Assembly: GCA_051294905.1 (NCBI GenBank)
Contig: CM119383.1
Coordinates: 6,076,001-6,140,000 of the forward strand
From: Botryllus schlosseri
Lineage: Eukaryota
Length of the DNA stretch: 64,000 bases
Direction: 5' to 3'
The notes under the pieces were generated by a model. That model was given only the letters and a program-made list of their open reading frames with translations, searched no databases and was not told the origin of the DNA. Below, one piece after another: positions 2,528 to 25,660 of this stretch. Positions within the stretch are counted from its first letter, which is position 1; each line of letters opens with the position of its first letter. Made by a program: the position numbers and the translations under genes.

Positions 2528-5500
2528 ATGGAATGGCGTCCAGATCCTAAGCGACACGACCTTTGCGTTGCTTTCGAGCCAAACCCGGTAGGTATATATA
2601 ACATTTTCGCCCTAATCAGTTAGTCTGACCGCAGCACATCGTTACAGGAACTCTGCACGAATGTCATACATATATTGCACTCCGTCAATGATACTCACCT
2701 TTACGCGTGTGGGACAAACGCCCGGCAACCACGCTGCATATACGTCAACAAGAAGGTGAATTATGACGGCAGTATCTTATCATAGAACGGACTTCTGACC
2801 CGCATATCTACATGGTTTCGAAATACAATGGGGTGGAAAATTTCTGTAACTATTTAAAGGCGGTTTGTCATAGCAGCGAATAAGGTCAGATTAAGCGACC
2901 GGTGCCGCTGATTTTTCAAATCAAACGCATTTTATGAGATTATTGATGTATCATTAACGGTAGTTCACTTGCAACAATACCGGCATTCGTGCTACATATA
3001 TACTTGCGTACTGTTCTACTTAGACGGTGATTTACTGCTGGCGCCAGATATATATTAGAATCATTGGGATGTACACCATACACATCTACCTTTACATTAC
3101 CGGTATAGTATTAACGTGTTTGAAACCCGTCAGTCGTCGTTTAGCAAAAGGAATCGAATAAATAATTTGCGACCACACAATGCCACTATACGTGCGTCAT
3201 ATGGGTATCAGTGTCATATCGCGACAGTGGTTGACTCTGTCGGGTTCGTATCTCCTCAAGGCCAGCCAGTTTGCTCCGTCCAAGTTTACTTAGAGCTTAG
3301 ACGATAGTGCATGACTAACGGTCTGCGTGGATCAAGTATTCGCCGGCAATGAAATCAGAGAAACGTTCCTTATTCGATGCTTTATTCGTCTGGTTAATTT
3401 CCTCGACGTGCCCAACCGGCTTTTACGCGCGCGGAGTTACTCACAATACGCCCCAAATGTGTCATAAGTCGGATATTTGTCTTTGATGTATTGTTCATAG
3501 TTGCACCTTAATCTGGCAAATACAATGTATCATTCTGGAATCGTGTGGATGAATTTAGAATTTTTCTTGTGCTACGATCACGATCCTTACGCGAAGGCGA
3601 CATCGTATCGCTGTCAACCATTCAGCGTTATACATTCTATTTTGACAGACTTTCACGCAAGAAGGATCAGATATAAGGGGTGAATCAAAATCTCCCGGAG
3701 ACCCTTTTTCGAAAACTGTATCGACAATGACAGGTATGTCCACACTGGCGCTGGCACGCAATACCTTCAACTGTATTCTTTCCAATGTTCTACTATCTGG
3801 TGAGGTGACGATTACCCCTGACGAATGTCAGACAAAAATATTCTTATCTTGGCCGGATGAAAATAATCATACCTTATGCAACCGCTATCATTTCTATTAT
3901 GTAATGTTTCCCAGCTTTGCATGCTCAAAACTTGTTCAATAATTCGTGTTACATTTCCCAAGTATGTGTCACTCGACGAAATGCATTCAAATCTCAAAGT
4001 CAGGTAGAATGTTACCCGACACGCAATGTATCGAATGACACATAATAAGCATTTTTGTCGCATTGTCCGAATTTCAATATCCGCCACCGCACTCGAGTTG
4101 TATCATCTTTGTACTTAGTCTTTCTACGGCCCAGTTTTTTACAGGGAATAACAGTTTCAAGTACCTGATCATGATCATATAGTGAGATAGGCAATATATC
4201 TATCGCGTTTATTTGAATTCTTCTTGAATTACACTTCTCTTGCCCTGTGTATGAGCCGTGTTCGATAAGAGTTACAGTTCTATTGTTAACGTGTGACAGA
4301 TCTATCTTTTCGGAATATTTGGCTAATACCGTGTTGTCGGATATAAATTGATCTAGCTATCAGATTTTAAATTTGGATTAGTCTGCCACATCTTTACTCT
4401 CGCCGCTGTGAAGACACCCAGGGGCATTAAAAACGCACCGAAATTTTGTTTTTTCGTCACAACGAGGTGATTGTAATTCAACTATTTTCATGTCTCATTC
4501 ATGGTTAGCTGTTTTGTGCCGCCTTTACCAAATTGTAACCGACAATAACCTCGGAATCTTCAAGTCATCGTTTTTTTTTATGGACACTGCACAGATGCTA
4601 GATAAGATTGCTATTATTGTGCTTGTACTTGTTGTAGTTACTAAGAGATGCATTCCATCCGCAATTACCCAGTCTTAGTCGGGAATTTGCGCTTTGATGG
4701 AGTTTTATTTAGGCTTGGCCTAACGCGCTACGCTATTCACAGCACGTGACATCAAACGAACGTAAACTTTTCTTAACCGTTGCACGCGCCTGCATTGAGT
4801 CAAGTAGATTACCTACTGATGAGCTGACTTATCTGCATGAATCCTAACGCCCTTTCGCAAAGTTCAATCCACTTTAGGCGTATTATTGCACCACTTCCGA
4901 TGACATGTTGTGTCTTGTATAGCATCCTACGGCAGTCACGGTATGATTACACTGAGTAAGGAAGCATCTCCTGTGACAGACTCCTTGACTGCTTTGTTTC
5001 TGCATATCCGTGTACTCTTGCTTCAAATATTTATGCAGTATTTACTGAGACTGGTTTTAACTTGAAAGCATTGGTCGATTTCTCATTCTGTATCCAGGGC
5101 GTGCGCATAGTGTGTAGTCATTTTACGCGTGACTGACTGGCCACGTTTTGTGATGACATAATCGGGCCGGTAGTGCGGGGCATGGACCGGAGCCGGATCG
5201 GATATCCGGCCGGATTTTTTCAATTTTGGTCGGGCCGGATCGGAGCCGGATCAGTATTTTTTCTGCTACGGCCGGAGCCGGATCGGAGCCGGATCAGTAT
5301 ATTCTTGATCCGGCCACAGCATGACTATAGTAACTTCCGACCACAGTGAGAAAATAACCGAGCCATATCTGTAAAATCACTGAGCCATGACCAAAATTTA
5401 TGCTAACTCATTCAATCGCAGCATTTATTATATGACTAAGCATTTATTACCTCCATCATCCTTGTTTCCACTGTATGTGGTCGATGCGGTCTCCTTAGCG

Positions 5501-8500
5501 TGCAGTGAGATGGCTGGTAATCCTAGTATTATAGGATCATCGAAAATAGCAAAAGCCTTGTATGAAGAAGGGAAAGCAAACGCGGTTGATGTGAAGGGAA
5601 ATAAAAGTGAGGTGTGGAAGAGTTTTGCCTTGCCAACTGGCCCTGGCACCAGTGAAGTGAGGAGGGCGGTGACTACTCAGGATTTGTTCTCTGTCGGCAT
5701 GGTGGTTTGACATTCAAGCATGAGAGAAAGAACAGTGGCACAACACATTAAGCCACTCATATCAAAACCAGATGCAGTGTGTCGAAAGTCATACCATCAG
5801 CGGGCCAACGTTCAATGTCATCCTTTCTGACAAAAAAAATCTGCTCCGCTTCCGACTAAGGCCGAGGTACAATTGCTCAAAGCAGCCACATCATTCATTG
5901 TAAAGGATTTGAGACCATTCCGATCTTCAGAGGATGATGGTTTTGTCGAACTTGCTCAAACATTTATGGATATAGGGTCCGTGTATGATCGAATGAATGC
6001 TGAAGAAATAATCCCATCCAGACATACCGTTAAAAGGGAAGTTCTAAGCCGTGCTGCACTGGAGAAGGAAAAAATTTCTATCATTGTGAAAGCGACTATT
6101 GGCGAATATGGGATGATTGAGCTCACCACGGATATGTGGGCTGATGTCAAAAGCAGACATTACATGTCACTGACAGCCCATTACATTCGCGAAGAAAAGT
6201 TGCACTCTGTAGCAATATCTGCAACAAAGTTTGAGGAGCAGAAATCAGGTGTAAATCTGCTAAATAAAATATAGGAATGTTGCACTGAGATTGGACTATC
6301 TAGCTCTATGCTAGACTTCTGTTATTTTGTAACAGATGACGCAAGCAATATAAGATCTGCACCGACAACACATCAGAGACTGACATGTGCTTGCCACATG
6401 TTGCCGACTGTCCTGCAGCACACGTTACAGCCCTCGATGTCCGTGCATAGTCACTGCCCTATAGTTCTGTCTGATACTGACATGATAGAAAAAGTTTCTG
6501 ATACAATATCTCGTTGCAAGTCGTTGACCGCATATAGTCTACCTTGTCATTTTTAATTCGATACCAGCCTGTGAGTGTAGTTTTCATATCCCATACAAAC
6601 CTGTGAGTTTTTGTTACCATGTAGCCTACCTTGTCTTTTTATATTCGATACCAGCCTGGGAGTGTTTATGTAGTGTTTGTGTAGTTTTCATATTCCATAC
6701 AAAGCTGTGAGTTTCAATGCCATGTTTCTTTTTTTTGAATATAACCTGAACCCATTGCCTACTACTGCATTTGTTGTTAACTGGAAATAGCTAGTCGTAC
6801 ATGAATATTATCGGAGTTTTTTGGATCGGATATCGCTCATTTCAAGTATCCGGCCTCGGAGTCGGAGTGGAGTCGGACCAGAGGATTGTGGAACAGGATC
6901 GGAGTCGGACCAAATAATTTGTCGATCCGCCCCGCACTACGGGCCGGTCACGTCTAAATATGTATTCAGTTCGCAGAATATAATCTTTGCACACGATCAT
7001 ATGCTATGCATTTGGAAGTGACTGTCCGGTCTATTGCCAACTAAATTTGCTGTTTTATTTGTCATGATTTCGTGATATTCAAGCAAAAATCCCGCATTTA
7101 AAGTCTAGCAAAATTTACTCATTGTGAACTTGGACACATGAGTTGCATATGTATTTTATTCAATCTCTTGTTACTTGTCTTCCAAGGTAGGCATACCAAA
7201 TGTTCTTTTGCGATGTTATCTGTGATACCTGTTTAATTACTGGTTACGAGAAAGTTGTAACGCCAGCACCCACGGCTATAGATTTAGTTGTTTGTGACAT
7301 GGCACAGCCCTGCATCACAAAAAAGGACAACAAAACTTGTATTCTTGAATTATGTGTGACACTGGAAAGCCCACGAAATTCCATGCGAATAATATGTATT
7401 GCTTTTGTGGGAGTTTAAAATATACGCCTAAAACCTTCCGTCCGGCTTTCGTATATATTACGTCTCCGTATCGCGTGCAATCAACCGCACAGTTATCAGT
7501 TTGGTTTACTGTTAATCTCCAGTCCGTTTTCCCACGCACTGTAAGTCCGGAGCGAGTCACTTAACACAGACTTCTAATAAAGCGACTTGAAGAATTAACA
7601 ACGTTTGACGTATTAAAACAAAGCCAAGCAGCCTTCCCATGGTGATAATCCTTCTCAGAAATATATTCACAACTTCACACGCGTTGGGACTTCATTTTTC
7701 TTCCGTTTTCTGGAACCCATCTGTCATACATCAGACACACACAGCGCAAGACACCCATTGGATAGGAAACGAATGCTGTTCCCCCTAAATATTATAGCAT
7801 TAATAAGATAACGTCGAACAGAAGAGATTACAAACTGTTGACATACCACACGCAGTAAACTTGAGGTATACGCGACGAAAAACAGTTTTATTTACACAGG
7901 AAGATTGATATCACATTTACATACTTAACACTTCGCTTTGTATCTTTGATTATGCCAACATCCGTAGGCGGCGTGAAGTCCACTCGAACGCAAAATCTCT
8001 GTGAACGCGTGAGTGAAGCTCAAGTGGCACTTGAGCAACACGCCTTTTGTGCAAGTGCGATTGCGGCAAAGTTCAAAAAACGTGCGGAAGATGGGATGTT
8101 GGCTTTTTTGTTCCAATTCATATTGAAGTGCAGTGAAGCGAATGGAATTGATTGCACTCAGTTTGAGACTTGAAAAATCACGACTGAATGTCCAGAATAC
8201 ACTTGTAAAAGTTTAACGTCTGGTGATATATATCATCGTATACGACTCACACGGCTATTGTATTCCAGCTAACTCAAAATCTATCGAAATCATTGGTAAA
8301 CGTACACTCGTACAGCGGTGTTTTGCTTCGTAAATCTGGATTCTTTATATCTTCTAGTTAATGATAAATTAATAGGTAATCGAGATCAAATTAAATTTGT
8401 ACTAATAGAGGTTAAACGTTCACGTATGTTATGTAAAGTTATTCCCGTATAAATTAAGCGTTTCATTCCCTATTGCCATAATATACAACAAATCACTCTG

Positions 8501-11500
8501 TTTTCTGGCGCATTATCATGTTTGCGAGATGCGAGCGCAGATACGCGAAATTTCAATTGCAATTAATTGTTATCGGCGCGCGGTCAAGCTCATAAATATT
8601 GTTATGACTAAAACTGCTTGCATCCGTTTTATTTCATGACGGGGCTGTTTGAATTTTGCTAACTCCGTTGTTTTTAGGTGGATCTTTGTTCACTGCTAAC
8701 AATCCCAATTCTCGAAACAAGAACGGAATCATCCGGAAATCGCCCGCCGACCGTGCCGACGGCGCGCTGGCCACCGACGAATTTGACAACTTTCGTCTGA
8801 GCGGTACGTAAGCTCTACTGCGTTCCGTGCTCATGCACTCTTGTAGTTAAAACGATATTACAGTTGATTAGCAATAAAAGGTCGGTGATCAAAAGTTTTA
8901 CCGCTCTTTTTCCGCCGGTGTGACGTAGTACATTATCGAAACGTTTATACTTCTTTAATTATGTGTAAGAGCGGGACGTTGAAGCTAAGTTAGGAAACCC
9001 ATTACGCATAGGATTGGTTTCTGGTAAACCAAAATTGACTTGTCGATTACTTATTGAAAGTTACGCAATTTCGGATGCGATCGATGACTGTTAAGGAGAG
9101 GACTATTTTTTACCGATTATGTATCATGGTAACATATAATATAGGTATCTTATTTTCGAATCATTAAATATGATTTATGTATTACTATTATATAATTCTG
9201 TGGATCTAGTACCGAGCCTATGATGCTAATTCACAGTCATCATAGCACTCAATCGACACGAAACCAAGAATTGCTCCCAAAGCACCGTGAATGACTTAGT
9301 ATATAGCCTGGCGTAGTGTATCAGCTGTTCACCTTATTCAATTTGTTGAAATCCATCCATCAAATATAGGCTCGTTTCGTATTTGCGAATGTCGTCCGAT
9401 CTCTAAAATATTTAACTCCTACCACATCATACATTTGGTGCTGGAGCAGGACCGTTGGGGCAAATACTTTCATATATTATGATTCTGAAAGGATCGGTTT
9501 ATTGCAGGTTTAATTGAGCAACACTTCTTCCATACGGATACGAGTAGAAAGTTGGCTAAATCAATGTTCGAAAATTGCTAATTTTAGAATTTTCGGTAAT
9601 ATTTGAAGAGCTTCTTGGAGGTACAGAACTTCAATATAAAATTAAATAGTATATTCATATTGAAATGAACCCGAATATTTTCGGCTGACACTCATCAGGG
9701 GTATATCAACGATACAATGTTCTTTCCAATTCTCTACTAGTTGCTGACGATTACCCCTGACGAGTGTCAGCCTAAAATATTCGGGTTCATTTCAATATGA
9801 ATATACTATTTAATTTTCGGTAATTACAATTCCGTTTCACCCATCAGCCTTACCGATTATATTTTATTGGTTGCAACTAGCACACGAAACAGAGACATTG
9901 CATTGGCTGCGGATATCCCGCAATTCCTTTTTTTATAGTATGTTGTGTTCCAGGAATATTTGGCGAAATCTCTTTTGTGTTTAGGTATGCCAAATTTATT
10001 CACGTTTGTAGTTGTTGTGAAAAACACGGCGCAGATTGAAAGCAAACGGTTGTTTCGAAAGCACACAAACATATAAAAACACGAGAAGGCCGATTATCAA
10101 ATAAGCTATTACATTCCAGCGCGGAGCTTATTCAGTCGGTTAAAGAGAAGGTATTTCTCCTTCAAGATCGATGTGTAGTGCGTTAACCTTGCCTCACGAT
10201 TTGCCAAACATCTCTCGCTATCAATATGGAAATAGCGACTTTTCTGATGGAAGTGATGCGCACATATACTGTGGGCACACTTTTGTAACATATACGTTGA
10301 TATAAACTAATACTCCTAAACAGGAAATCATATACCGGTATACCAGAACCAATCTGCTTCATTTTTACAGATATACTATCACACGATTCGTGGAATGTTG
10401 AAGCCTGATATAACCTCTGTGTTCCTAACTTTTAGATAACATTTCAGGGCAAAATACTTTTATTTCCTTATTAGCATTCCTCAGTAAAAAGTCATCCCTC
10501 GTTAGGCATCGCGACCCGAATTTATCATATTTTGACGACGAACAAAACTCGCTTTCAATACCCGCCATTCATAGATGTGTGTCATGTATTTAGACGCCAG
10601 ATTCGTGAGCATGTTTACGGTTCCTGGACTGGATTCCGATCAGGAAAAGATCGTCGTGCTGTTCAAGGAAAACGCCGAGGAAATTCCTCTGGAAATTCTC
10701 ACTCAAGATAGCGACTACTCAGTCAACCTGGTGTACTCAAGAATGGCCACTTTATGCGCGGTATGTCCCTACATATAGAACTTGTAGGCGTCGTTTCTAT
10801 AGTTATATCGTCCCGATTTAATCTTTCGGGCTATATTCCGGAAGAGTAGTAGACCTGTAAAATTGGTATGAGAAGCTGTTTAATCGGATTACGCCGAAGT
10901 GATATATTTACATCACAAGGACTGATCTCTAGAGCGCATCAATCTCTGATCTGCAGTACACTCACGCCTCGTATATACTTACGTCTACAGAACGACCGCG
11001 GCGGCTTGACATGGCTTTCTCAAAACAGGCAACTAGCCACCTTCTCCAAAATGCGGATCGCATGTCCGGTTTCGATTCAGCATCCCGGCAAGTCTCGGGC
11101 AATGTCGTTTTTTTACGACGAGATCGGTGAGATTTTACGCCTGTTACCGGGAACAACTGCGATTGCAATGCGTGCTGTGCTTTTTAGAGAGCAGCTATGT
11201 GATTCCCAACCCAGAGCAGCCTGATAACCCGACCGTGTACGCAATTTTCGGCACTCCAAAGTAAGATTCTTTCGCTGGATGCACGGAGTTGATTTCAATG
11301 TATTGGACAACTCAGCTGTTTCGAATTAGATTAGAATGTATAGCTACTCATTTTCTATACTCGTTGCGCACTAGTTAATTATCAAAGTCGATTTGCCAGC
11401 AAGCAACGGACGCGATGACACATTTATGCATTGTTCCATCACAGGGGAGCGTATCACGCGACAGCTACTTGCGTTTACTCCATGCGAGACATCAGACAGC

Positions 11501-14500
11501 ACATGGACACGTACAAATATTGGAACAAGCCTAGCACGAACCAGGATTCCGCTTCGCCTTTGTTTTCGTGGTACTCAGATCCCGATTATCCCGCTCCCGG
11601 GTCCTGTGAGGGAGACACCAGCCAGTTTTCGAAACAGAGGTATATATCTTGACAAGGCTTTATACAGAACTTACATAGGTACGACAAAACAATGGTTTTT
11701 AATTTCGTATTGATTTCACGTCTACAGAGCTATCTACGGCAACGAGCATCCGCTGAAATTCGGGATGATCAAACCCAAAGACGGATTCGCGATTTATCAA
11801 GATTCCGGCGTCGCGTATTCTTACATCATAGTCGACCGCATTAGGAGAAAGGAAATCTTCTCTGGGCCTTCAAGTGAAGTCTTCGAAAAGGACTACGATG
11901 TCGTGCATTATATCACAGGTGATTATCGTAGTGAGAGGTGCTACGCACCAATTTTTGGTACAGTAAAGTAGAATTTTGACACCTGCGAGGTGAACATAAA
12001 GATTCCTGACGTAGGTCTTCGCAGATTTAAATATCTTTTATGTGTGTGACGTAGCTGAGTCAACAGTAATTGGCACTATACTTCTCGACAGGCAGCATCA
12101 TTTTTAATGCCAACACGGGCTTTGTGCCCGGGAATCTGGCGCGCCGCAAATCTGTCCGCGCAATCACGATATCTTGTTTTTTGTTCGCCCAAAATATGGA
12201 GTTAATAACCATGTTGTATTGGTTGGGATTGTAGATATGAATTCCCGCTGATGTCAGGTGCATCGCATTCCTGACCCTAAACGCAAGTTCGCCATTACCA
12301 CGAGCTATCAGTCACCCGCAGATAAAACTAGGTGACGCCGGCTTCACGCTGCTCGACCCACAATAGGTTTAAAATGACATTGGCTCAAGTGGAATCTAGA
12401 GATGAAAAATGTCTTTCAATACGTTACGAGATGACGTTGGTACGAATTATTTATTTTGTGTAGCCGCAAATGTCCTGTATATGAGTTAGAAGGTTGCCTC
12501 GGTAGGATAGCGGTGATAGGAGATATTCTGGTGATTTGGTCGGTCTTATATAAATGACACGCATATATCCATTCCCTTTGATTTATTGACCTACATGAAA
12601 CCTAAATATAGTTTATATTACCGGATTGGTCACAATCGAGCTTATTGCTATTCGTATACTGATTTATCTGTCGCAGAATTCATGCTGCTGGTAAACTCGC
12701 CCGATTTCTTTCCCCAATTTTTCCGAAATGCTCCCGGTATGGTGTTGTGATATTCTGCATTAATCACTAACGGGAAAAGAGCAACAATAGCTTGCTGGTA
12801 GGTTACATGGCGCGTCATGCATTGATACATAATACGTATCTAAACAAACTTATGAATAACGTAAATGGGATTGAATTTAGCGGTTAGAGAAAAATCCAGT
12901 TATACTATCTGTTTATCATGCGCCGCAGGGGCTGCGATAACATTAAAAAATCCGGTGGGTTTAGAAATTCTTGTGAATCTTCCTGTACTTCCAACAATGC
13001 TGTTGCCTTTACTGTTGGCTGTTAAATGTTAAGTGTATGCAACACGCGCTAATACGGTTCTAAGTGCAATCGTGATATAGCGTCAAATTCCTATGGATAC
13101 GTTTTCATCTTATTTGATTTCTATTTTCCTCGAACGATGGATATCCACTTGCATGGTCCACCATAATATGACGACAATGGACTTATCAATTTGCGCACGC
13201 GAAGTTTGGCGTATCGCCTGCGTTTCGCGTGCAGACTTAATGGTATGCGAAATCCAATACGTAAAATGTATTGTATTCTAGAAACAATCGCCGGCTATTT
13301 ACGTTTGTCAGTTTTGAATTAATGACATTGCGGCTTATGCGTTCGATAAACATGCAAATCTGCCTTCACTTTCTATTCCAATTCGTGACTTGTGCAATGC
13401 GGCTTTTTGGATGCAGTACCAGCGCACCACGACTCAATCTGAGTGGTTATCCGCGCGAACACAGCAAGCACTATACACTTTACCGTCAGGTGGTGGCTAA
13501 TTGTGTCAACTTCGGATCAGCAGCTGTGTGAATGTAATGCATCCATCTGCGGTATGCCCAACTCAACTTACCATCAATTATCAATCGAACATTGAGACTA
13601 GACTGCCGATGCTCGCGGAACATATCCTGCATAACTACCGCGAGATACAATCACATCATAAACCACACTTTCAACAAACAAATGTATCACTTGCTTGCCG
13701 CTGGCAAGTTCATGCATAATCACGTGCGGATGCCTATTCTTGTCACGCCATTTTACGGCCTACGCGTGACTACATTATTACCGCAGCACCACGTGTATAA
13801 TGACAGACAATATGCTTGCATCTCAGTGGCGACATAGCGTCGTGGTATGATCCACACTCCACAGCTACAACACCAATGGGTTGTTGAAGGTTTATCTAGG
13901 CTCTTTCTCACCACGTGATCCGTGTCGTATAAAAGCCTAGAAGTGGGCCGAGCAAGTCTGTAAATACGGAATCAAAAATACAGAATATCGGCCTGCTGGT
14001 GTAGAATGACCATTGACCAATGTATAGTCGAAACACCGCGAATATCAAACAAAAAAACATACTTGCGTCTCTGTGGTGCAACGTAAAGCTTAATTGTTGG
14101 TCTATTTGTGCACAGCGAGTATATCAATTTACATACGTCCTTGACTGGCAATGATTACCAAGCATTAGGCGTGACACTGCATATCTAAATTATCCTAATC
14201 CTCTCACGGTTTTATTTCAGATGTCGGTCTTATTAAGAGGATTGTGTTTTCGGTGGAAAATCGGTCGTTACATTGGGAGATACCGCAGCGACAGCTTTAC
14301 AACGTATGTGGCTACATTTTTAATTCGTGTGTCCTTACACTGGCATGCACTCACAATTATTTAAATCTGTCTAGGAATCTGACACAAAGCACAAGATCTT
14401 GACGGTGAAGAAAGGCGATAATGGGTTTATCTACTTTGGAACAAGCTCGTCTGTTGAGCAAATCAAAATCGCCGGGTGCGAGCAATATATGACGTGTGGA

Positions 14501-17500
14501 GAATGCAAACTCGCTAACGACCCGTACTGCGAGTGGGACGATCTTGACATTGCATGCAAAGAAGTGGACTTCACGTGAGCTTCTACTTTTTATGTATATA
14601 GATGAGATATGTTTTTATAGATAACTTCGACCAGTAAAGTATAATCTTCATCATCAAATATCGTGTGAGAAAAAGCGCGAAATACCGTACAAAGCGCTAC
14701 TGTTTGATATATAATACTCAGTAGAGCAATATCGAGTTTATCAGATGAATTTCGCCACGCGATAGTACCAATAAATATACAACAAAATAACTTTCATTTT
14801 AACTGAGATCAAAAATACCATCAATTTTGCTGATCTCATCTTTGAATTTTGATGGGAAATAACTTCTATTAGCGTGATGCATGCGTGATTACACGCATTG
14901 TTTGTTAATGCGTATTGATTACCTATAGTTATAGGTGATTATTGGTCATACGAAAATAGTTTCTTACTGCTACGCGACTCGGCGAGCTTGAATGCAAATA
15001 CGGCGGGAACTGCTACTAATGCAGTTAGTATACTATATTGTCGTCACAGTGCACAGTCACTTGACGTCACACCGTGCAGGGTGTAGCAATTTTAGGTCAA
15101 TTGATGTAGTATATGCGGTTTCGTAGTTGTCACACTGCGAACATAAGTGCCAGTGTGCGCGACCGCAATGAAACTCGCATACATTCATGACCGCAAACGA
15201 AGGTCGCTTCATTCCCTATGATGAAACGAACCTCCTTTAGCTGTACCACATACTCGAAAATTCGTGACAGATATCGGCCGCCACGGTTGGGTTGTGAAGT
15301 TTTCAAAACATATTTTTAGATTTGCAAAGAAAGATCCGCACAAATTCTTGGGAAAGGGGAATGATACCGGGTGCAGTGTTTCCGACTCGCGAAACGACCA
15401 CAAGAAACAATCGCCAGGTGCGTCAAAACAAAATTATAGTAAACACATCCCGATGCTTAATAGAATGATATGATATATGTGGTATATGATATATACGGTA
15501 TATATGATATGTATGTTGTACAATATATATATGATTGAATTATTTCGAAATACCTCTCGGATGTTCTAATAAATCCAACATACTGCCCATATATAATATT
15601 GTGTGCTTATCATATAGGATACGTGTTAAGTTAAAAGCACTGTAATAAACAACTTTCTAAGGCGCTGGCTTCAACCTTTGCCAGTTCATACTGACCGGTT
15701 CACGCGAGCAGCGTTTGAAGTCACGTCGCACATTCAGGGTTTCTTTTACGCATAATCAGATAACAATGTAATTTTGTTCCAATTGTTACATAACTATCTG
15801 CGATGCGATGGAGTCATAATACAGTATGGGTGTTACTCAGAGGCGAAAAAAAACGTGTTTTTGTATTCGAAACCCAATTTCCACACGAATGCATTTCCGT
15901 ATGTGCTTCTAATAGTGCACTGCATACTATATTACGATATCTCCAAGTCGGGGAAATAGATTAACTTATTTTCCATACTCCTGTGTCGCGACCTCGCGAA
16001 CTTGAAGCTTGACACCTTGACAGCGCGCGACCCCAGTGTGGCTAAGTGTGGCAACGTCATTCTCCATATAATATGACGTCATTATAGTCGTTTGATCGTC
16101 CGATGAGCCGATGTTGGTATAGCGGTAGAATGATGAATTATATCACCCGTCGCAATTTTCGTATCAGGTACGAAGATGAGAAATTTGATACCCAACGTTG
16201 CAACGCGCCAGTAAGCTGTTTACGATGTACTTTAGAGTTTAGACCACACGCGATCAAGCACGTTACTCCAAAAATAATAGCCCCAAGTGTTGCGAGGGTA
16301 ATTGAAACGGTTCCGATGGGCTATAACGAGGCTGGAATAGAAGTATTCTGCCCCTTCGAAAAATAATCAAAGTGTATTATATCATCAAATGAATTCGATA
16401 TACTAGGGTCAAGGTTCTCTTCTGCACACACACATGTATACTATAGATATTCCAGGAAAATTTAATTAGCACACATTATTTACTTTCGTATCTTAGCGAT
16501 CGTGTTTATTAGCGAATACACGGAACGTCATCAATGCGTGACCGTCTGAAATGTTTTCTATATTAAACGTCAACTCAAGCTGAGCAATGAGCATGAATGA
16601 GCCTCCTTATTTACCACATATATCTTGGAGATGGATTGTCACGCAGATTAAAACTCGCAAGGGATGTAGTTACGAAAAGAGAAAAGTGTTGGAAATGAAC
16701 GTGTTCAATTAACTTACATGTTGCACCATCCAGATATTGCGCATTGGTATCGCGTCCTAATTACCTACTTGTAGATAATGATTGCAGCATGCTTTGTCAT
16801 TATCCTCAAATGCAGCACTGAAGCTCATATTCAGCGCCAACTAACCGTGATAATAATCCATCTCCGTGTTTAATTAATTTGACATCGCAGCGTTGTGAAG
16901 TTCTACTCTGTCTGCATGTTACACATTGGCAACCGTGTATGTCTCGTGTATCAGCAATATATTTCCATTTTAGATGACATCGTTGTCGATCCGAAGGAAC
17001 TGATGCTGAAGAATGAAGTGTTAACCAACCAAACCAGAGAGCTCAATCGTACCATTGCCAGATTGGAGAGGGAAAAGCTTGAACTCCAAACCGACCTGAC
17101 GCGCAACATGAACGAATTGTATAACCAGTACAACAATTACACTCAACTGTCCACCCTGCTGTTGCAATACGACGAAAGGCAGAAAATTGTGGTCCAGCTG
17201 TATCGGGACACCATGTACTCGCTGCACATATGTCAACAAGAACAACTTACAAGGTAGGTTGGCTTCTTTTGTGAATCGCATAGCGGGCATGCTGGCTAAA
17301 ATTGTAGACATGGGTGTTCTGTTCTAATGCTAGGCCTGGCAATGTGGATTTATACCTCTGTTAAGTGTTATTACTCCCGTAACAGTTTCATAGTATACAC
17401 TGTGTCAGCTTCCGGTCAAATTACCATAGGGGGAATAAGTCTCAATCGTTACGTTTTATAAGTCGGAACCTATGCGATATCAAATGCCCCGTATGAATGA

Positions 17501-20500
17501 TGAGATATCGCTATAGAGATTCCCTTAAACTTTGGTCCTAATTGCCGAACTCGGTGCCAAGTACAAATGTCTTAATTACACGGCATTTTCGGGTGCAACT
17601 GTCAATTTTTTCACTCAGGTTGTTAACTCGTGACGCTGATCACTGGCATATGATGCCGACGATTCTGCAAATTATGACTGGTGGAATGGAAAAAAATCAC
17701 GATTTTTTTTGCATCCTAATATGCAACTCTAGAAGATAATATGTATGTATGGCTGTGTACAGCTGTGCATACTGCATAACCAACCAGACATATTACGCAT
17801 GTAGTGTAGATAGATACAGTATGGAAAATGAAGTGATTAGTTTTTGGATATCTTGACTTTAATGTGTTTAGTATCTTGTAAGAGTGTGTTCATTTTGTGA
17901 ACTCTATACTGCCATTTTGCCGCATCATTTATAGCCCCGATGGCAGTTCATGCGTCTTCCGATTTGAGAATTGATAGGGAGCATAAACAATATATCGCTC
18001 CGAGCAATCGGGATATATTCGACGATTACAATGTCACATTGCATGAATAATGGCATATAATTGACAGGCTCTCTTCGATGTAGAGATGAGAAGTTGATAA
18101 ACCCACTTCCCGCACTTAAGGTGTAACATGTTATCCTTAGAGCAAAACGTGCATATTTTGTAAACTAACCTAAATAGAATAGCGTAACTGCAGATACCAA
18201 ATACGCGACTTCGACTCACCCAATGGCGGTACCTGTTCTTGAAATGTGATATAGCATATACGAATGCAGTATTGCAGAGACAGCCCCTCCGCGTTGAGTT
18301 AAGCAGCGGACTTTCACGCCTAGTCAATCATATTAACCGTAGTTACGACAATTTGTCACGATTTACAGTGCTAACCACGTGCTTAAAATGCCAGTTTGGT
18401 GACATACCGATAATGTCGTTGGCATAAGGTGCGCAAGAATGTCAAAGACGATTAGGCGACCGCAACTATCACGTTCAAACATTGTTGTGGGGTAATATTT
18501 TCTCAAAAGTGAAGCATGGCTTTCTTTTAACGTTCGAATACGATTATACCGTGGAAACCGCAGTTTAATACAGCACGTCACGATAATTGATGGTCGCTTA
18601 AATGGTAACATTGTATTATCGCCCACAAATTGAGTTTCATAGACGTACGCTGTGATTTATGCGTGTCGCGTAATAATTACACCCGCTTTGAACGCGTGTT
18701 CTTTATATTCCGACTGGTATTTCCACATCACCTCGATAATTCAATTGTCCGGGTACTTGACAAAATGTCAGTGGCACTGACCTGCCGTTTCGATAGCGAC
18801 ATATATACTTTCCTTACTAACGGGTGCTTTTAAAAACCTTGGTATTAGATTCCTTTTTTTTGCAGGAAAAGAGCCGAAAGGAATGCCATCATAGAATTGA
18901 AGGCCTACAAAAACGCGTCTTCCAAATGCGAGACGGAAAGAAAAACGGCTGAATCGTCTGAATGCAAATGCAACAAAGTGATTGATAAGAGAGGGACTGG
19001 TACGTACAAAAGGCATAGTACGCTTTGAATGCTGGAAATTGTTTATACGATATCATTTGTATGAGTAAATTTTCGCGTTTAGCAGTGAATCTATATACGA
19101 TACGCGTTGGTAAGATTTATGGAATAATGTAGGGTCTTTTTATTATCGTAAAAGCATGTCAAATTGTCCACTATCACTGATACTATCAGGTGCCTTATAA
19201 GCTTCAATTTTGCGCAGATACCCAAGTCAGAAACACCGCCCACTACGGCCAGGCTCCATCCAGCTACAACGTATTGACCGCTTGCAATGATAAAGTCGAC
19301 AAACTCCACGTTCAAGTCTCCTATTTGAAGCAAGCCAGAGCCAACTTGACGAGACAAAGACACGCGTTACACTTGAACCTCGCAAGCTTAAAGAAGGAAA
19401 ATGCGAAGTTATCGACCACACTGGAAGGTATATATATATATATATATACTGTATGTCAACTCCCTGGTAGTGTCCCCCGTTTTAATGTTCACTTAATTGA
19501 AAAAGTATAACGATTAATTTTAGTATATGACCACGAAGCGTTCGGTACACAGCCATCTCTTGAGATTATCACGAAGAGATAGCGTGTAGTAAAATAAGGC
19601 CTATTCGGTATATAAACATCAATTTCAAGGAACCACCACCATCCAAACGGCATCTCAGTGTTCGGAAATTGAAATATCGCATGTGCTGCCTTACAGACAC
19701 GACACATATTTGATGGGCTGTCACCAGATTCTATTAGTTCACTAGTGGTGAATCTATCACTACCACTGACCGATATATGCTATCCTGTTCTCAGAGAGTA
19801 AGGGGTGTGACAGCGAGAACCAATGGAAACAGTACCTGCCCACAAACAAGCTCTTCCTCGTCACCCAAGAATCGAAAACGTATGCCGAAGCCGAGAGGGA
19901 ATGTGAGGTGCTCGGTGGGTCAGTAGCTCTGCTGAAGGACGAGGGTGAAGCTAGGTGAGATACAAATTCTTTCGTAAACGCACTACTTTGTTATAAGAGA
20001 ATTAAGTTCAGCTTGAAATTTAATCACTGTCGATGAAAATGTTTCGTGACTTTGTATTCCGTTTTCAGATTTGTATTCAATCTTACACACTCTCGGAATC
20101 AAAGGAAAAGGTACTGGGTTGGTCTACGAAAATTCCGCAATAGCGTCCAATGGGCGGACGGCAGCCATTTTGATCAAAGCGACACACCAAGATTTCCAAC
20201 TGGCCAGGGGGGAAAGCTACGAAACAGGTACTATTGAGATAAAACCCATGGTATATCTAGATTCGTAGTTGTATTCGTAGGTTCCTATAATATCCGAAGA
20301 TGGTCAGTCAGTAACGAAGTATTTCTACATTTTTCAAGTACTCAAGTAGTTTTAGCCTATTTGTACTATACTTACTCAACTGGTTATGTTTCTATAGACA
20401 ACTTCTACTCGATAGTTTTGTCGGCAAAGCTACTTACTTTTTAAACGTGGGATTTATAACGTAGCAAGTAGTTTTGGAATATGGTTGCATCACTTTTATG

Positions 20501-21008
20501 ATTGTTTATGATAACTTGGCGATATTGTCCCAATATCATGGTAATTGAATATATATTCAAAGATCGTACTTATTGATAGCATCGTGAGTCACCTTGCGGT
20601 TATGCGAGCGGCCTTTCCGATTAACTGCTAAACGTGTGCGACCCATCGACTGTAGATTGTACTTTATCTTGAATAGTAGAACTAACTAGTTTGACCACCT
20701 CTGATAATATCATTCCAGCAGTTTTAATTCGGACAACTGATATAACAGCAACCGGATTATGTGTCTAAATGGTTGCTTTTAAACAATCTAATATAGAATG
20801 CAAAACTTGACCGAATTAAATCTTTCATTGCAGCATCGAGTATTGCGTGGAAACACTGCATCACGTAATGAAATGGTCGCTGACGTCGTGTTCTAAACAT
20901 AGGAGAGTAATATGCATGAAAGGTACGGAACCAGCATTATACATTCCTTCAAAGCACGAATCAACCTTGATATCCTTGTTATCAGATGACGACTCGGTGA
21001 TCAGATAA
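2528..21008 (+). CDS. Divergent semaphorin-like protein: Sema domain + PSI + coiled coil + C-type lectin-like domain; 5' exons unresolved
   Basis: 19 GT-AG exons joined in one frame (858 aa + TAA): 2528-2587, 2648-2755, 3649-3733, 8678-8803, 10594-10760, 10991-11126, 11188-11260, 11445-11639, 11728-11918, 14221-14303, 14375-14574, 15320-15417, 16974-17253, 18866-18999, 19218-19427, 19795-19954, 20069-20227, 20834-20922, 20986-21008. Sema motifs ELCTNVIHIL..NDTHLYACGTNARQPRC, VYSRMATLCANDRGG, ATCVYSMRDI, PAPGSC, HPL, YDVV; PSI CEQYMTCGECKLANDPYCEWD; CTLD GCDSENQW..TYAEAERECEVLGG..YWVGL..WADGS..EYCV..W..SC..VIC. No TM segment in the model. Confidence 0.8.
3790..3845 (+). mobile_element. Degenerate PLE family-B pseudo-LTR fragment with decayed hammerhead core
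   Basis: gtgacgattaccc-CTGACGA-atgtcagac-aaaa-atattc matches the family-B sequence at 9741-9786, but GAAA reads AAAA and the stem I 3' strand is lost. Confidence 0.6.
5171..6939 (+). mobile_element. Internally deleted hAT DNA transposon in a semaphorin intron
   Basis: 11-bp perfect TIR TAGTGCGGGGC (5171-5181 / 6929-6939); perfect 8-bp TSD CGGGCCGG (5163-5170 / 6940-6947); subterminal CCGGAGCCGGATC repeats. Confidence 0.92.
5590..6556 (+). pseudogene. hAT transposase remnant
   Basis: Frameshifted BED-finger-like SEVWKSF...GFVLCRH..SGTQH; then DLRPF..EDDGF, LTTDMW, YMSLTAHYI, VTDDASNI, CACHML; in-frame TAG at 6272-6274; C-terminal half missing. Confidence 0.85.
9669..9702 (-). ncRNA. Minimal type I hammerhead ribozyme motif (family B), intact core
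   Basis: Sense: ACCC-CUGAUGA-GUGUCAGCC-GAAA-AUAUU-C-GGGU; palindromic stem III AAUAUU, UUC site. The upstream pseudoknot partner is truncated in this arm. Confidence 0.7.
9753..9786 (+). ncRNA. Hammerhead motif (family B) with mutated core
   Basis: ACCC-CUGACGA-GUGUCAGCC-UAAA-AUAUU-C-GGGU; the catalytic G12 is U (9773), so it is predicted inactive. Confidence 0.65.
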
Positions 21009-21435
21009 AAGATTGGCAGCGAGTGGCTTTCTCCTTGAAAGCCTGTTTCTGTCATGATGATCATCATACTGCATAAGACGCAGAAGAACGCCAAGGAATG
21101 CTACGAGCGCTCGACACAACTCAGCATTCGCTACCAAAATCACCAGTCGTTCTTTCAAATCATGTTTGATACTATTCTTTTATGGCATAAAGTTTATTAT
21201 ATTCTTGCTATTAAATTGTTTCTTTTACTTGGAGAAAAATATTGTAGGTCGCCTCTGAATAAGAGATATTCGGAAGAAAACCATGTGTATTCGTCAGTGT
21301 TGAGATAAGATATGAGGAGCGGTAATCAGATCATTAAGTAGTCCACATAGCGCCATCCAGCTCGAATCAGAGACCACAGAGCAGTATTCTGATGAAAGTG
21401 GGGACCACCCACATTGGCCCAATGACCGACATTCG

Positions 21436-21600
21436 CCGAGCGAGATAGTGTAATGGTTGTGCGTCCGGCTTCTCGATCGGTAGGTCGTGGGTTCGATTCC
21501 CGACCGGGTCAGACCAAAGACTCGAAAACTGGTAACCGCGGCTATCCTGATGGGCGCTCAGCAATCACGGATAGCATGGAGGAGAAAAAAACCGGGGGTG
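21436..21600 (+). mobile_element. tRNA-derived SINE (3' extent uncertain)
   Basis: A-box-like TAGTGTAATGG, B-box GGGTTCGATTCCC (about 21489-21501), then core GACCAAAGACTCGAAAACTGGTA..GCGCTCAGC; a second copy lies at 27690-27863. Confidence 0.75.
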
Positions 21601-22304
21601 CAGGCTAGATGATGACCTTACTATATAAAGGCCGTATCGCATATCCGTCGTCAAAGCATCTCGATAGTGCAGGCGAAAAAGAATACCATATCTCTCTCGG
21701 CTCAACTCGAAAACCGCAATTCATACGGAAGTGGGGATTACTAAATTGGTGAACGTGATGAACCGCACATGGTTCTAGTTCGCTTTATTAGTATTTTATC
21801 AATTCAGAACACCGCAAGAATGCGATAAGACAACAATATAGGGAGGAGTCCTTCAATCAGCTCTTTGCGACATCTTCCTATCTGTTAATTACACACATTT
21901 CGAATTGTCGGAGGTTTATTTGGGTTTCTCCTCCCATATGTCAACATCCATACGGCGACTCCACAAAAGTCCAGAAAAAGACCTGACGAACGGTACAAAT
22001 ACGAGAGTAGATAATGAAAGCGAGAGCAAGAGGACGTCAAAGAAAAAGTGAAGATAATGAACAATGTCACTTTTACACTGTGTCATGAGTCAATATCACA
22101 GCTTGAGCAGATGAAAATGCGTCCGTATTGAGATTTTCAGATCGACTTGAGACACGTTGTAGATTGCTAAGTATTACAATGTTGTGGTCCTTTTCACACT
22201 TTGGCTTTGGTTACCCCGTAGATTAGGTATCTCCACTTCCTTATCTGGGCTCCTCTTCCCCCGCCGATGCCGTTCTTACGGCGATAAAAAAGCCCAGAAA
22301 AATA

Positions 22305-22548
22305 CCCGACGAAAGAAAGCACTCACTCACTCACAAGGAATGGAAAGAACTAGTAGAAAGGGCCGCGGCTTCAAAAAAGATCAACATCGAAAAAAATTGT
22401 GACATCGGGCACTCTAGGCCGAAGTGGATGTTGGAGTAAACGATCGCTACTGATGCGTGTCGTTCCACATCCTCCTATCTGTTCATGACATCGCATTGTA
22501 CATTGTGTGTGACTTGTCAAGATGAAAGATATAACCCAACGATATTAT
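22305..22548 (+). repeat. Unclassified dispersed repeat, copy 1
   Basis: Aligns by eye to the reverse complement of 25255-25482 (shared blocks ACCCGACGAAAGAAAGCACTCAC, GAAAGGGCCGCGGCTTCAAAA, ACATCGGGCACTCTAGGCCGA, ACATCGCATTGTACATTGTGT). Confidence 0.8.
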
Positions 22549-22899
22549 ATTATTATTACCCAACCCTACCGATAAGTTTTTAGTCCTTGTATCACACATC
22601 ACTGAACATAACCTTTGACACCTGAACAAGGTCGATTTGCTGCCTAGTGCTCACTTTATTGTAAGTCGAAATGTAGAGTAAGCGTTCAGTTTTAATAGAC
22701 ACAGTATCTGGCATTGTTTAGATAAGGGCCCAATTGGCACTATGTTATCTATACGGTACTCCTATTTCTGGTTTCAACTGTAACTCATTATATGTTATGG
22801 TACCGTACCGGTAGCGTCTAGTGGCAAAACTACGTGACACTCATTCCTGTATCATGCTTACTGAAAAAATTGTAATTTTCCAGTTTCTATACTATAAGA

Positions 22900-24718
22900 A
22901 TGCTTGGCCGAACATCCACCGTACTCCTGCGACGAGGTTTCCTCACGTCAGCCCGTCAAGCTGGTGGACACGGTCCGCCAACGGCAAAGGATATTCTTCC
23001 ATTCAATCCATTTCAGAACAGGTCAGAAATTACATCACAATCCGTTATTTTCTATTTGAAATCATTGAGTAGTCTCGATTTCAAGATGAAATACTCGTCT
23101 ACGACCTGCTCCTACGCTACCGCAGTAGGCCTATTATTATACGGCATGTCACAAACATTGAACATTACCCAAGCCATATTGTCTATGTGAAGTATAGATT
23201 CAATTCAAATTCAATTTAATTATTGCTAGTAATTTCATCATTTCAACACACCATGAGACTGCGATATAATGAAAGATAGGAAGGTGTGTAAACGACTTGG
23301 AGTAGTCTTCGAAATCAAACACCCACCTGGCCTAGGCGATATATAAATGGAGGCATGCACACTGAATGAAAAGTGAAAGAAAATTATATGATAGGACCTG
23401 TGATAAAAAAGGTGGCATGTGCCAGAAGGCGAGATCGATGTGTCAGGTCGTGGTCCGGTAAAGTACAGCGCTTACTAGTATTGATTCAGTAGAAATTGTT
23501 TGTATTTTAACTTTAACTACAGACATGCTCGACGACTGACATAAGTCCTTTACAGAGTGCACTCTACTTCTCAAATGAACATCTTTCAGATGATATGCTA
23601 TGACGATGTGATAAGCTTTTTAGTTTGCCCAAGCCCATTCCAGTCTCTGGCTCTAGAGTTAACCGTAAGGTTGTCCGCAGTGCACTTCTTTGACTTCTTG
23701 ACACGCTGCCTTCACACAACGTGGGCAAACTGGCTTGCTACATATGTTAATCTTGTCACTAGTCTTTACTTTATATTGTTTTGTGGTTAGGATGTGAGTG
23801 AATTGACTAGTTTGTGTCTGAAAATTGCCGCTAATTCCCTCCAAACGTTACATATAGTTGATCTGTGTCGACAGGTTTCACAGAGGACTTACAGAACTCC
23901 AATATACAATTGAATAGTACATTCATATTGAAATGAACCCAAATATTTTCGGCTGACACTCATCAGGGGTAATCGTCAGCAACTAGTAGAGAATTCAAAA
24001 TAACATTGTATAGCAACAATCGTATCACAAAATATGACGTCACCAGCATGAAATATCGAATACGAGAGCGTTCAATTTCACACAATAAAATTAGAGATCT
24101 CGCGCCATTTTTGGTGCTGTCATGCTGTGAATTCAAATTTGTAACCTAGGGAAACCTCCATTGACCCAAAATTGCAGAAAAGGCAACAAGAACCAGAAAA
24201 AGGAGGTAGCAATTGTGTGCTTACAAATACGTCACATTGTGCTGGTCACCTCAGATTTCATATGTGTCGGTTTACCAAATTAAATAAATGAATTAGCCTT
24301 CTTTCCTGATATAAATGTTCACTGTTCACGGCTAACGTTTTTGCCGGTGGAATTCAGTTCTAAATGCATACATGCATGAAACAAAATTCCACACTTGGAA
24401 ATTGGGCCAACGTTGAGCAGGTCTGGGTAGTTGCATGGGGTTTCTATGCGTCTCCTCTCTCAACCCGAAAGACTATATTTTTACCCTCTCATTATGCCTT
24501 GCGACTTCATGTAGGCTAGCCTTCAAACTCCCACTCCCCGCCCGACTCCGCAAAATTAAAATGCATTTCTAGATTCTAGCTGCTGGCTTACAAAATCTCA
24601 TATGTTCTTTTCTTTCAGATGGGTCCTTCTGGTTAAGATGGGAATTTTTGCTGGATCCGGGTTTGGCCTTCCGTTCTATGCCGTCTATTTTCAGTTGAAG
24701 AAGAAGTACGGAAAATGA
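22900..24718 (+). CDS. COX7C: Cytochrome c oxidase subunit 7C, mitochondrial (73 aa)
   Basis: Exons 22900-23021 and 24619-24718: MLGRTSTVLLRRGFLTSARQAGGHGPPTAKDILPFNPFQNRWVLLVKMGIFAGSGFGLPFYAVYFQLKKKYGK. Presequence plus the LPF..N.W.LL.KM....G..F..PF.....QL pattern of COX7C; AATAAA near 24909. Confidence 0.9.
23198..23517 (-). mobile_element. 3' fragment of an L2/CR1-group-like LINE
   Basis: Homologous to 27940-28297 and 30400-30670; ends in a short (AATTG/TTGAA)n tail at 23198-23220. Confidence 0.65.
23889..24012 (-). mobile_element. PLE family-B pseudo-LTR fragment with intact hammerhead (23937-23970), antisense in the COX7C intron
   Basis: Sense: GCUGAC-gauu-ACCC-CUGAUGA-GUGUCAGCC-GAAA-AUAUU-U-GGGU, then ATG (23926) MNVLFNCILEFC. 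Confidence 0.8.
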
Positions 24719-25254
24719 TATGTGAAACAAGCTATGCTCTTCGGCATTTTATAAGACATTCGACAGAATACAACTTGTAGACATGATTTCATTGCTGCGT
24801 TTTTCACTATCAATATCCTTCGGTAAAGTTGTGGAGGAATAGGGGTCAATTCAGCAGTCGTGGCATCTATATGTAGAAGTGTGGCACCTATCTAATACGG
24901 GTATATCAATAAATGCAAAATGAGTGTACGACTTTATGTGTACAACAGTGTTTACTGTTTATATATACATATTGTTTGCAAATACTCAGTCCTGCTCTGT
25001 AATTAACTCGAAAATATGGTTTCAGATTGATGGCTGTGCCCAATCCTTCAAGTTATTAATAATCCTGGCAGATTTGTCTGTAGTTCAGTCATCAAAGACA
25101 CAAACAAAATTATTATCTCTGTCCTAACTGCAGAAGAAGACGTATCGAAACCGCATCTAGTCTGTAAGAACATTGATAGCAGCTTATGTGCCATCACTGA
25201 GCAGCAGCAGTACATTGCTTCTTGTCCGCAGTAAATTTGTGTTTGACAGACAGA

Positions 25255-25482
25255 TGGGTTATATTTTCCATCTGAGCAAGGCACACACAGACACAATGTA
25301 CAATGCGATGTAAAGAACAGATAGGAGAGTATCGAACGACACGCAGTTGCGATCCTTTTTAGACTGACATCCACCTCGGCCTAGAGTGCCCGATGTAACA
25401 GTTCTTTTCGATGTTGATCATTTTGAAGCCGCGGCCCTTTCTAGTTCTTTCCCTACCATGTGAGTGCTTTCTTTCGTCGGGT
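25255..25482 (-). repeat. Unclassified dispersed repeat, copy 2
   Basis: Inverted homologue of 22305-22548. Confidence 0.8.
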
Positions 25483-25660
25483 CTTTTGTCCGTCTGACAG
25501 AATTTTCAGGACAGTTGGTTCATGAAATTCGCGGTCTACGGGTGTGATGCCTTCGATCTATCGATATATTAACACAAGTTCGCCGCGGATGCAGAACATG
25601 AGAAAATAGTGATCTTATAAGGGTGTGTGAGATGGAAGCTGTCAGACTCGCCATTTCAAC

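Follow-up and report, generated by a model that had tools for sequence, protein, structure and literature searches.

A semaphorin of Botryllus schlosseri with a coiled-coil stalk and a C-type lectin domain, and its relatives in other ascidians

Gene Model

The DNA analyzed here, hereafter the window, is a gap-free stretch of 64,000 nucleotides (nt) from the ascidian Botryllus schlosseri (NCBI GenBank assembly GCA_051294905.1, contig CM119383.1, positions 6,076,001 to 6,140,000 of the forward strand); it is eukaryotic DNA of ~40% G+C and comes from a 495-Mb assembly. Its positions 2528-21008 (+) hold 18-19 of the ~21 exons of one gene, which encodes a semaphorin, a type of cell-guidance signal, whose Sema and PSI domains are followed by a coiled-coil stalk and a C-type lectin domain (CTLD). 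Motifs of a PSI domain, of C-type lectins and, unmistakably, of semaphorins can be read in stop-free stretches of the + strand, along with two stretches rich in heptads. With the related proteins of Styela and Phallusia as guides, AG/GT boundaries were enumerated and the frame was kept open back from the RNA-supported 3' part, which gave a single best chain of 18 exons across 2528-21008 (Table 1). The order of the encoded elements is Sema, PSI, a linker, coiled coil 1, a Cys-rich linker, leucine-zipper coiled coil 2, CTLD and a TAA stop codon. As described in an earlier sequence-only reading of this DNA, no stop interrupts the frame between the Sema exons and the TAA at 21006-21008; the elements quoted in that reading were found in place, both of its heptad-rich peptides falling in exons (16974-17253 and 19218-19427).

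The exons within 2528-14303 rest on homology and canonical splice sites, with RNA there only in the last ~300 nt. One more exon lies 303-469 bp upstream of the window and the gene therefore starts before 2528. Together with this upstream exon, the window exons encode 934 residues, and only the signal-peptide exon (exon 1) is lacking; the candidates for it, such as MRYACIVPLIVLKP 907 bp upstream, were weak and none was accepted.

The exon count depends on the candidate intron at 20923-20985, which is stop-free. If it is spliced, the tail reads DDDSVIR and the window contains the 19 exons counted in the sequence-only reading; if it is retained, 21 residues are inserted and the count is 18, while the stop codon is identical either way. 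RNA was mapped over window 14300-20299, 5' of this segment. Two RNA contigs extend 346 and 354 nt beyond 20227, and both would end just past ATTAAA at 21210, the sole poly(A) signal, if the segment were spliced, which is a weak hint that it is.

Table 1. Exons and related features of the semaphorin gene in the window, with the evidence for each (aa, amino acids; E, expect value)
Feature	Position	Strand	Description and evidence
Sema exon	2528..2587	+	20 aa; matches Styela exon 3 (20 aa); tblastn to Styela/Phallusia proteins, AG/GT sites, frame-consistent chain
Sema exon	2648..2755	+	36 aa, CTNVIHIL...YACGTNA motif; homology chain; length equals that of the Styela exon
Sema exon	3649..3733	+	28 aa; homology, splice-site chain
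Sema exon	8678..8803	+	41 aa; homology, splice-site chain
Sema exon	10594..10760	+	55 aa; 66% identity to Styela; homology, splice-site chain
Sema exon	10991..11126	+	45 aa, NDRGG motif; homology, splice-site chain
Sema exon	11188..11260	+	23 aa; homology, splice-site chain
Sema exon	11445..11639	+	64 aa; Pfam Sema E 4.7e-5 from this exon alone; query that found the orthologues
Sema exon	11728..11918	+	63 aa; homology, splice-site chain
Last Sema exon	14221..14303	+	27 aa; its last 30 nt read by the RNA loose end before 14375
Sema end and PSI domain	14375..14574	+	Pfam PSI E 8.4e-7 (exon 14375-14572); RNA joint 14574>15320
Linker exon	15320..15417	+	RNA joints on both sides; Cys conserved in 4/4 species
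Coiled coil 1	16974..17253	+	92 aa; RNA joints; heptad score above all shuffles; 54% identity to Styela; terminal Cys conserved in 3/4 species
Variable Cys-rich linker exon	18866..18999	+	44 aa, 3 Cys; RNA joints 17253>18866, 18999>19218
Coiled coil 2	19218..19427	+	Seven-heptad zipper; conserved NxT site; RNA and heptad evidence
CTLD exon 1	19795..19954	+	Begins at conserved neck Cys; RNA joints; aligned with orthologue CTLDs
CTLD exon 2	20069..20227	+	WVGL, W.DGS, GQG for EPN/QPD; Pfam Lectin_C partial, profile 36-67, E 0.02; RNA joint
CTLD exon 3	20834..20922	+	YCVE, WSL for WND, RRVIC; Pfam Lectin_C partial, profile 80-107; first 30 nt in the RNA loose end behind 20227
Candidate in-frame intron	20923..20985	+	63 nt, GT..AG at the last-intron position of Styela and Clavelina
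Terminal coding piece DDDSVIR and TAA	20986..21008	+	Resembles Styela terminal exon DFVEVER

RNA Evidence for One Transcript

When sequencing runs were searched with window 14300-20299, matches came from 14 probable RNA runs with 13-21% of the sampled words in them; the exonic share of the searched stretch is 21% (1241 of 6000 bases). Three contig runs from three different studies and one raw RNA-seq run were mapped onto the same region. The depth is exon-only, with ~100-500 in exons vs 0-8 in introns, and GT..AG joints were found at 14574>15320, 15417>16974, 17253>18866, 18999>19218 and 19954>20069, four GT..AG joints being present also in the raw reads. Both junctions that the sequence-only reading had singled out for checking hold: 15417>16974 was found in all three contig runs and in four raw reads, and 19427>19795, also GT..AG, is spanned by contigs of the same runs, with the short repeat there skipped. 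This repeat, a short TA-rich simple repeat at window 19420-19457, lies at the coiled-coil 2 donor, so that 19427>19795 is visible only via contigs. Sequence of the RNA loose end behind 20227 picks up again at 20834, in the last CTLD exon. A single contig of 1470 nt runs from inside the PSI exon to past the second CTLD exon, and the first 30 of its 346 extra letters read the last CTLD exon, while a 436-nt contig and the loose end at 14375 connect the PSI exon back to the Sema exons. These RNA joints, together with a frame that has no stop between PSI and the TAA, place the Sema and coiled-coil-CTLD parts in one mRNA. The gene is expressed, and Sema, PSI, coiled coil and CTLD are on one spliced transcript.

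The alternative that a semaphorin gene and a neighboring coiled-coil lectin gene were joined by read-through or by wrong gene prediction draws on the ability of contigs to bridge genes and on the 1.56-kb intron at 15418-16973, which is the border between the two halves. However, the joint across this intron is canonical and has a depth equal to that of the neighboring joints in three studies, it is seen in raw reads, the frame is open across the border, an equivalent junction with matching exons is found in three other species, and no pile-up of starts or ends was reported by the mapping of 14300-20299. We consider this alternative extremely improbable.

RNA loose ends were also observed inside the gene at 17162, 19217, 19810 and 19843. 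In some reads and one contig, the match to the exons begins only at these positions and is preceded by unrelated sequence. The 30 letters ahead of 17162 have two mismatches to a unit that is repeated seven times in alternating orientation at 4.95-5.04 Mb of contig C6, and the letters before 19810 are absent from the assembly. These internal loose ends may be chimeric reads or may come from a missing paralogue or other isoforms.

Domains and Motifs of the Encoded Protein

Taken singly, exons of the window match Pfam PSI, Sema and, in two colinear partial matches, Lectin_C (Table 1). The partial protein carries 10 NxS/T sites, where several had been noted before, and is probably glycosylated. 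No transmembrane-like segment was found in it (top 19-residue hydropathy 1.03), nor any membrane or glycosylphosphatidylinositol segment in its orthologues from Styela, Phallusia and Clavelina, in which the N-terminal signal is the only hydrophobic peak. In the same three orthologues no Pfam match to the Ig family or to TSP_1 was obtained, and the region after PSI is predicted to be helical; the absence of transmembrane and Ig domains claimed from the sequence is thus borne out. There is no basic C-terminal tail, as the protein ends in the CTLD and then the acidic DDDSVIR, and no collagen-like Gly-X-Y region was found in the sequence. A tribasic RKR after coiled coil 1 was considered as a convertase site and dropped, since its conservation does not extend to Styela. 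The N-termini of the three orthologues are hydrophobic and signal-like, which makes the secretion proposed in the sequence-only reading plausible, and the window protein is probably secreted.

The stalk of ~230 residues consists of the linker Cys, coiled coil 1, the variable Cys-rich linker and leucine-zipper coiled coil 2. In each of the four family members, which are the window protein and its three orthologues, a simple heptad score is higher than in any shuffle at two places, and these places are homologous. In coiled coil 2, the d positions are occupied by a Cys and then six Leu, and the a positions include one Asn and two Arg.

The CTLD retains four core Cys, W(V/I)GL, W.DGS and YCVE. 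Only the first Cys of the N-terminal pair of long-form CTLDs, at the neck/CTLD junction, is present. Across the four species the EPN/QPD position reads GQG, GQK, SQE or SQQ (GQG in the window) and the WND position reads WSL, WQL or WIL (WSL in the window). No more than one of the five ligands usual at Ca2+ site 2 is left, and the acidic residue preceding the Cys of YCVE varies. The doubt that had been raised about Ca2+-dependent sugar binding by the CTLD is justified by these sequence features. They also bear on the alternative that the protein is a soluble pattern-recognition lectin, whose CTLD binds microbial sugars and whose Sema head is a mere scaffold or effector. The CTLD does resemble the carbohydrate-recognition domains (CRDs) of DC-SIGN, langerin and mincle in sequence and fold, but its best sequence matches also include mannose-receptor-family CTLDs, and the motif positions read xQx and W-x-L in every family member. 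Such a lectin function is very unlikely in our judgment, and nothing was found in support of the link to innate recognition that had been suggested.

Relatives in Other Ascidians

An exhaustive phmmer search with one 64-aa Sema exon, which is sensitive to close relatives only, returned two real relatives: XP_039264041 of Styela clava (963 aa), named 'semaphorin-3E-like' in the database, and CAB3261267 of Phallusia mammillata (977 aa), named 'uncharacterized protein LOC100176831', a name that suggests a Ciona counterpart. The four other phmmer matches below E 0.001 are long repetitive proteins whose match covers a short part of the query at its 3' end; they were set aside. A third member of 942 aa, from Clavelina lepadiformis, was found only with the Phallusia query, and word-index searches with the Styela protein or a two-sequence profile yielded no further members. 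All three orthologues contain Pfam Sema (E 4e-19 to 1.5e-28), PSI and Lectin_C (E 3e-14 to 2e-16), the PSI of Clavelina being below the Pfam cut-off, and their identities to the window protein are 44% (Styela), 29% (Phallusia) and 30% (Clavelina). The Styela and Clavelina genes have 21 exons each, whose lengths match those of the window one to one; for Styela/window, lengths in aa are 20/20, 36/36, 55/55, 23/23, 52/52, 29/29 and 7/7, the last pair presuming that 20923-20985 is spliced. Conservation extends to the NxT site of the zipper and to four stalk Cys, three of them in all four species and the fourth in three. The ascidian species compared span three orders. Because stalk Cys and the NxT site are shared across them, and the exon structure is shared by Styela, Clavelina and the window, the Sema-CTLD fusion is old and maintained, and by these sequence comparisons it predates the split of these ascidian lineages.

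When the Sema-PSI halves of the three orthologues were compared with structures in the PDB, Sema3A ranked first (E 5e-61, 3e-46 and 6e-56), with ~490 residues aligned at E 5e-61. Sema4D followed 25-45 bits below Sema3A, and then classes 6, 2, 1, 5 and 7. By this ranking, the Sema head is nearest to vertebrate class 3, then to class 4. For the Phallusia member, class 4 semaphorins are the nearest non-tunicate database proteins, with ~25-28% over the Sema half. Lectin_C was absent from the other semaphorins returned (vertebrate class 4 and molluscan class 1-, 2- or 5-like) by these searches of limited reach.

Semaphorins are assigned to classes by the parts that come after Sema and PSI: classes 1, 4, 5 and 6 have a transmembrane helix, class 7 a glycosylphosphatidylinositol anchor, class 5 thrombospondin type 1 repeats, and class 3 an Ig domain and a basic tail. 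To the best of our knowledge, none of the accepted classes 1-7 and V has a coiled coil or a lectin domain. Because its members combine Sema, PSI, coiled coil and CTLD without a transmembrane segment, Ig, TSP1 or basic tail, and in the window do so on one transcript, the family is outside classes 1-7 and V, as had been claimed, and we regard it as a lineage-specific semaphorin class. The architecture is not unique to this genome, as its sequences are already in public databases as unstudied automatic predictions from three other ascidians; full-text searches of the literature gave no description of a Sema-CTLD family. The main survey of semaphorin evolution sampled starfish, lancelet and human, and included no tunicate (PMC6374515).

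Dimer or Trimer

In an AlphaFold (AF2) model, the Styela tail (mean pLDDT 75.7) folds into two helices of ~110 residues and the CTLD, for which the best Foldseek matches are the CRDs of langerin and DC-SIGN (TM score ~0.8, root-mean-square deviation ~2.6 Å). The likeness of neck and CTLD to oligomeric lectins, to which the sequence-only reading had pointed, therefore holds at the level of fold. Two copies of Styela 765-963 were also modeled, with an ipSAE of 0.38 vs 0.03 for the best control; that mark was reached by 21 of 30 proteins solved as same-chain pairs and by none of 23 solved as single chains. The two-copy runs agree in at least 61% of contacts and the partner pLDDT is at least 76. 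In the model, the interface is formed by the Styela segment homologous to 19218-19427, and its contacts are same-residue pairs spaced by seven, including Cys771-Cys771, so that the chains are parallel and in register.

The semaphorins whose structures are known form twofold dimers. A zipper with Asn and Arg in its a positions and a conserved core Cys would fit a two-stranded coil better than a three-stranded one. On the strength of these two points and of the two-copy model, a parallel, disulfide-linked dimer is favored over a trimer. The trimer that had been proposed corresponds to a collectin- or langerin-like assembly, in which the neck bundles three chains with three CTLDs and three Sema heads. 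A neck followed by a CTLD is indeed the layout of trimeric langerin, CL-K1, collectins and tetranectin, and two lectins that rank among the best fold matches, langerin and CL-K1, are trimeric. However, one conserved Cys at d would be left unpaired in a trimer, the semaphorins with solved structures are twofold dimers, and the two-copy model passes with a parallel in-register interface; we regard the trimer as unlikely. An antiparallel hairpin of both coiled coils within one chain, pinned by the conserved Cys, also ranks below the parallel dimer, as the Cys spacing of Styela misfits a turn at the predicted loop.

Proposed Function

The best explanation of these results, and in our view a likely one, is that the gene belongs to a conserved ascidian family of semaphorins that are built of Sema-PSI, coiled-coil stalk and CTLD and act as dimers. 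We propose that the dimer would be held by the parallel in-register coiled coil and by interchain disulfides at the conserved core Cys, that the Sema heads would engage plexins, and that the two CTLDs, at the distal tip of the stalk, would together bind a partner, either a protein or part of the matrix, with no Ca2+-dependent recognition of sugars involved. The genome has at least three loci for the plexin cytoplasmic domain (contig C14), and a plexin receptor is therefore available; the genome also contains three other Sema-domain loci. The CTLD pair may thus take the accessory-binding part, analogous to the Ig domain and basic tail that tie class 3 semaphorins to neuropilin or matrix. This part is suggested for it because neuropilin, the co-receptor of class 3, is regarded as vertebrate-only (PMC6374515). 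This function as a whole is inferred.

Several points weigh against this explanation. No signal-peptide exon was accepted from a scan of the upstream 20 kb that looked for an ATG together with a hydrophobic run and a phase-1 donor, so that secretion is deduced from the orthologues. The nearness to class 3 is a score ranking against solved structures rather than a phylogenetic placement. Searches outside ascidians were limited in reach and do not establish absence of the family there. The dimer model is of the Styela orthologue instead of the window protein and had two copies only, so that a trimer is not excluded by it, and passing the two-copy test may reflect a general memory of coiled coils. 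In addition, langerin and CL-K1, the best fold matches, are trimers.

A further-reaching proposal is that the family is the tunicate sister of vertebrate class 3 and forms a ninth class, the members of which are disulfide-locked dimers with a CTLD pair that recruits a tunicate-specific co-receptor or matrix ligand. We hold this only tentatively and think it doubtful as a whole; if true, the family would show the state of secreted chordate semaphorin signaling before, or instead of, neuropilin. The conserved, expressed ascidian family, with its class 3-like head and different tail, is informative about how secreted semaphorins and co-receptors for them originated in the animals most closely related to vertebrates, and offers a natural case of a swapped dimerizing and accessory-binding tail. 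Its proposed function can be tested in embryos of Ciona or Phallusia, where knock-outs and expression mapping are routine.

Neighboring Sequence

In the 4.9-kb intron of the semaphorin gene, 5831-6553 (+) is a transposon remnant, with the DNA-binding domain of a Hermes-type (hAT) transposase (E 8e-7) in its stop-free stretches. Approximately 15 kb downstream of the gene, in a region with strong T-over-A skew, exons of a seven-pass receptor of the Frizzled/Smoothened family are found at 36274-37881 (+) (Pfam Frizzled E 3e-18 and 2e-6). On the opposite strand, 40843-42804 (-) is a single-exon open reading frame of 653 aa whose product has a single thrombospondin type 1 repeat, a mucin-like region rich in Thr, a transmembrane segment and a tail rich in proline. 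None of the window's neighbors was found within 10 kb of the Styela or Clavelina gene.

Window 16797-26796 is repeated in reverse at positions 24709-34708 of C123, a 34.7-kb unplaced contig, and the 3' half of the gene is thus present twice in the assembly. This second copy was rejected as a paralogue, because identity over the 10 kb is 99.97% and the contig terminates where the match does; a haplotig or an assembly duplicate is the probable explanation.

Comparison with Known Semaphorins and Lectins

With the class 3 semaphorins (Sema3A, PDB 4gz8 and 7m0r), the ascidian protein shares the Sema and PSI head, the lack of a membrane anchor, which goes with probable secretion, and a C-terminal extension that likely holds the dimer and binds an accessory partner. 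It differs from them in that the coiled-coil stalk and CTLD replace the Ig domain and the basic, furin-processed tail of class 3. Class 4 (Sema4D, PDB 1olz; Sema4A; Sema4E) is the second-best solved match, but its Ig domain, transmembrane helix and cytoplasmic tail are absent from the ascidian protein.

Among the lectins, langerin, DC-SIGN and CL-K1 share with the ascidian protein an alpha-helical neck that leads straight into a CTLD of like fold. These lectins are type II membrane or collagenous proteins that form trimers or tetramers and have EPN and WND sites, whereas the ascidian CTLD ends a semaphorin, has lost these motifs, misses the second long-form Cys and is in a protein for which a dimer is favored. 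Tetranectin and the collectins, which were not ranked first in the sequence searches, likewise have a coiled-coil oligomerization segment before the CTLD; unlike them, the ascidian protein has neither a collagen region nor the Ca2+ site motifs, and its stalk is far longer.

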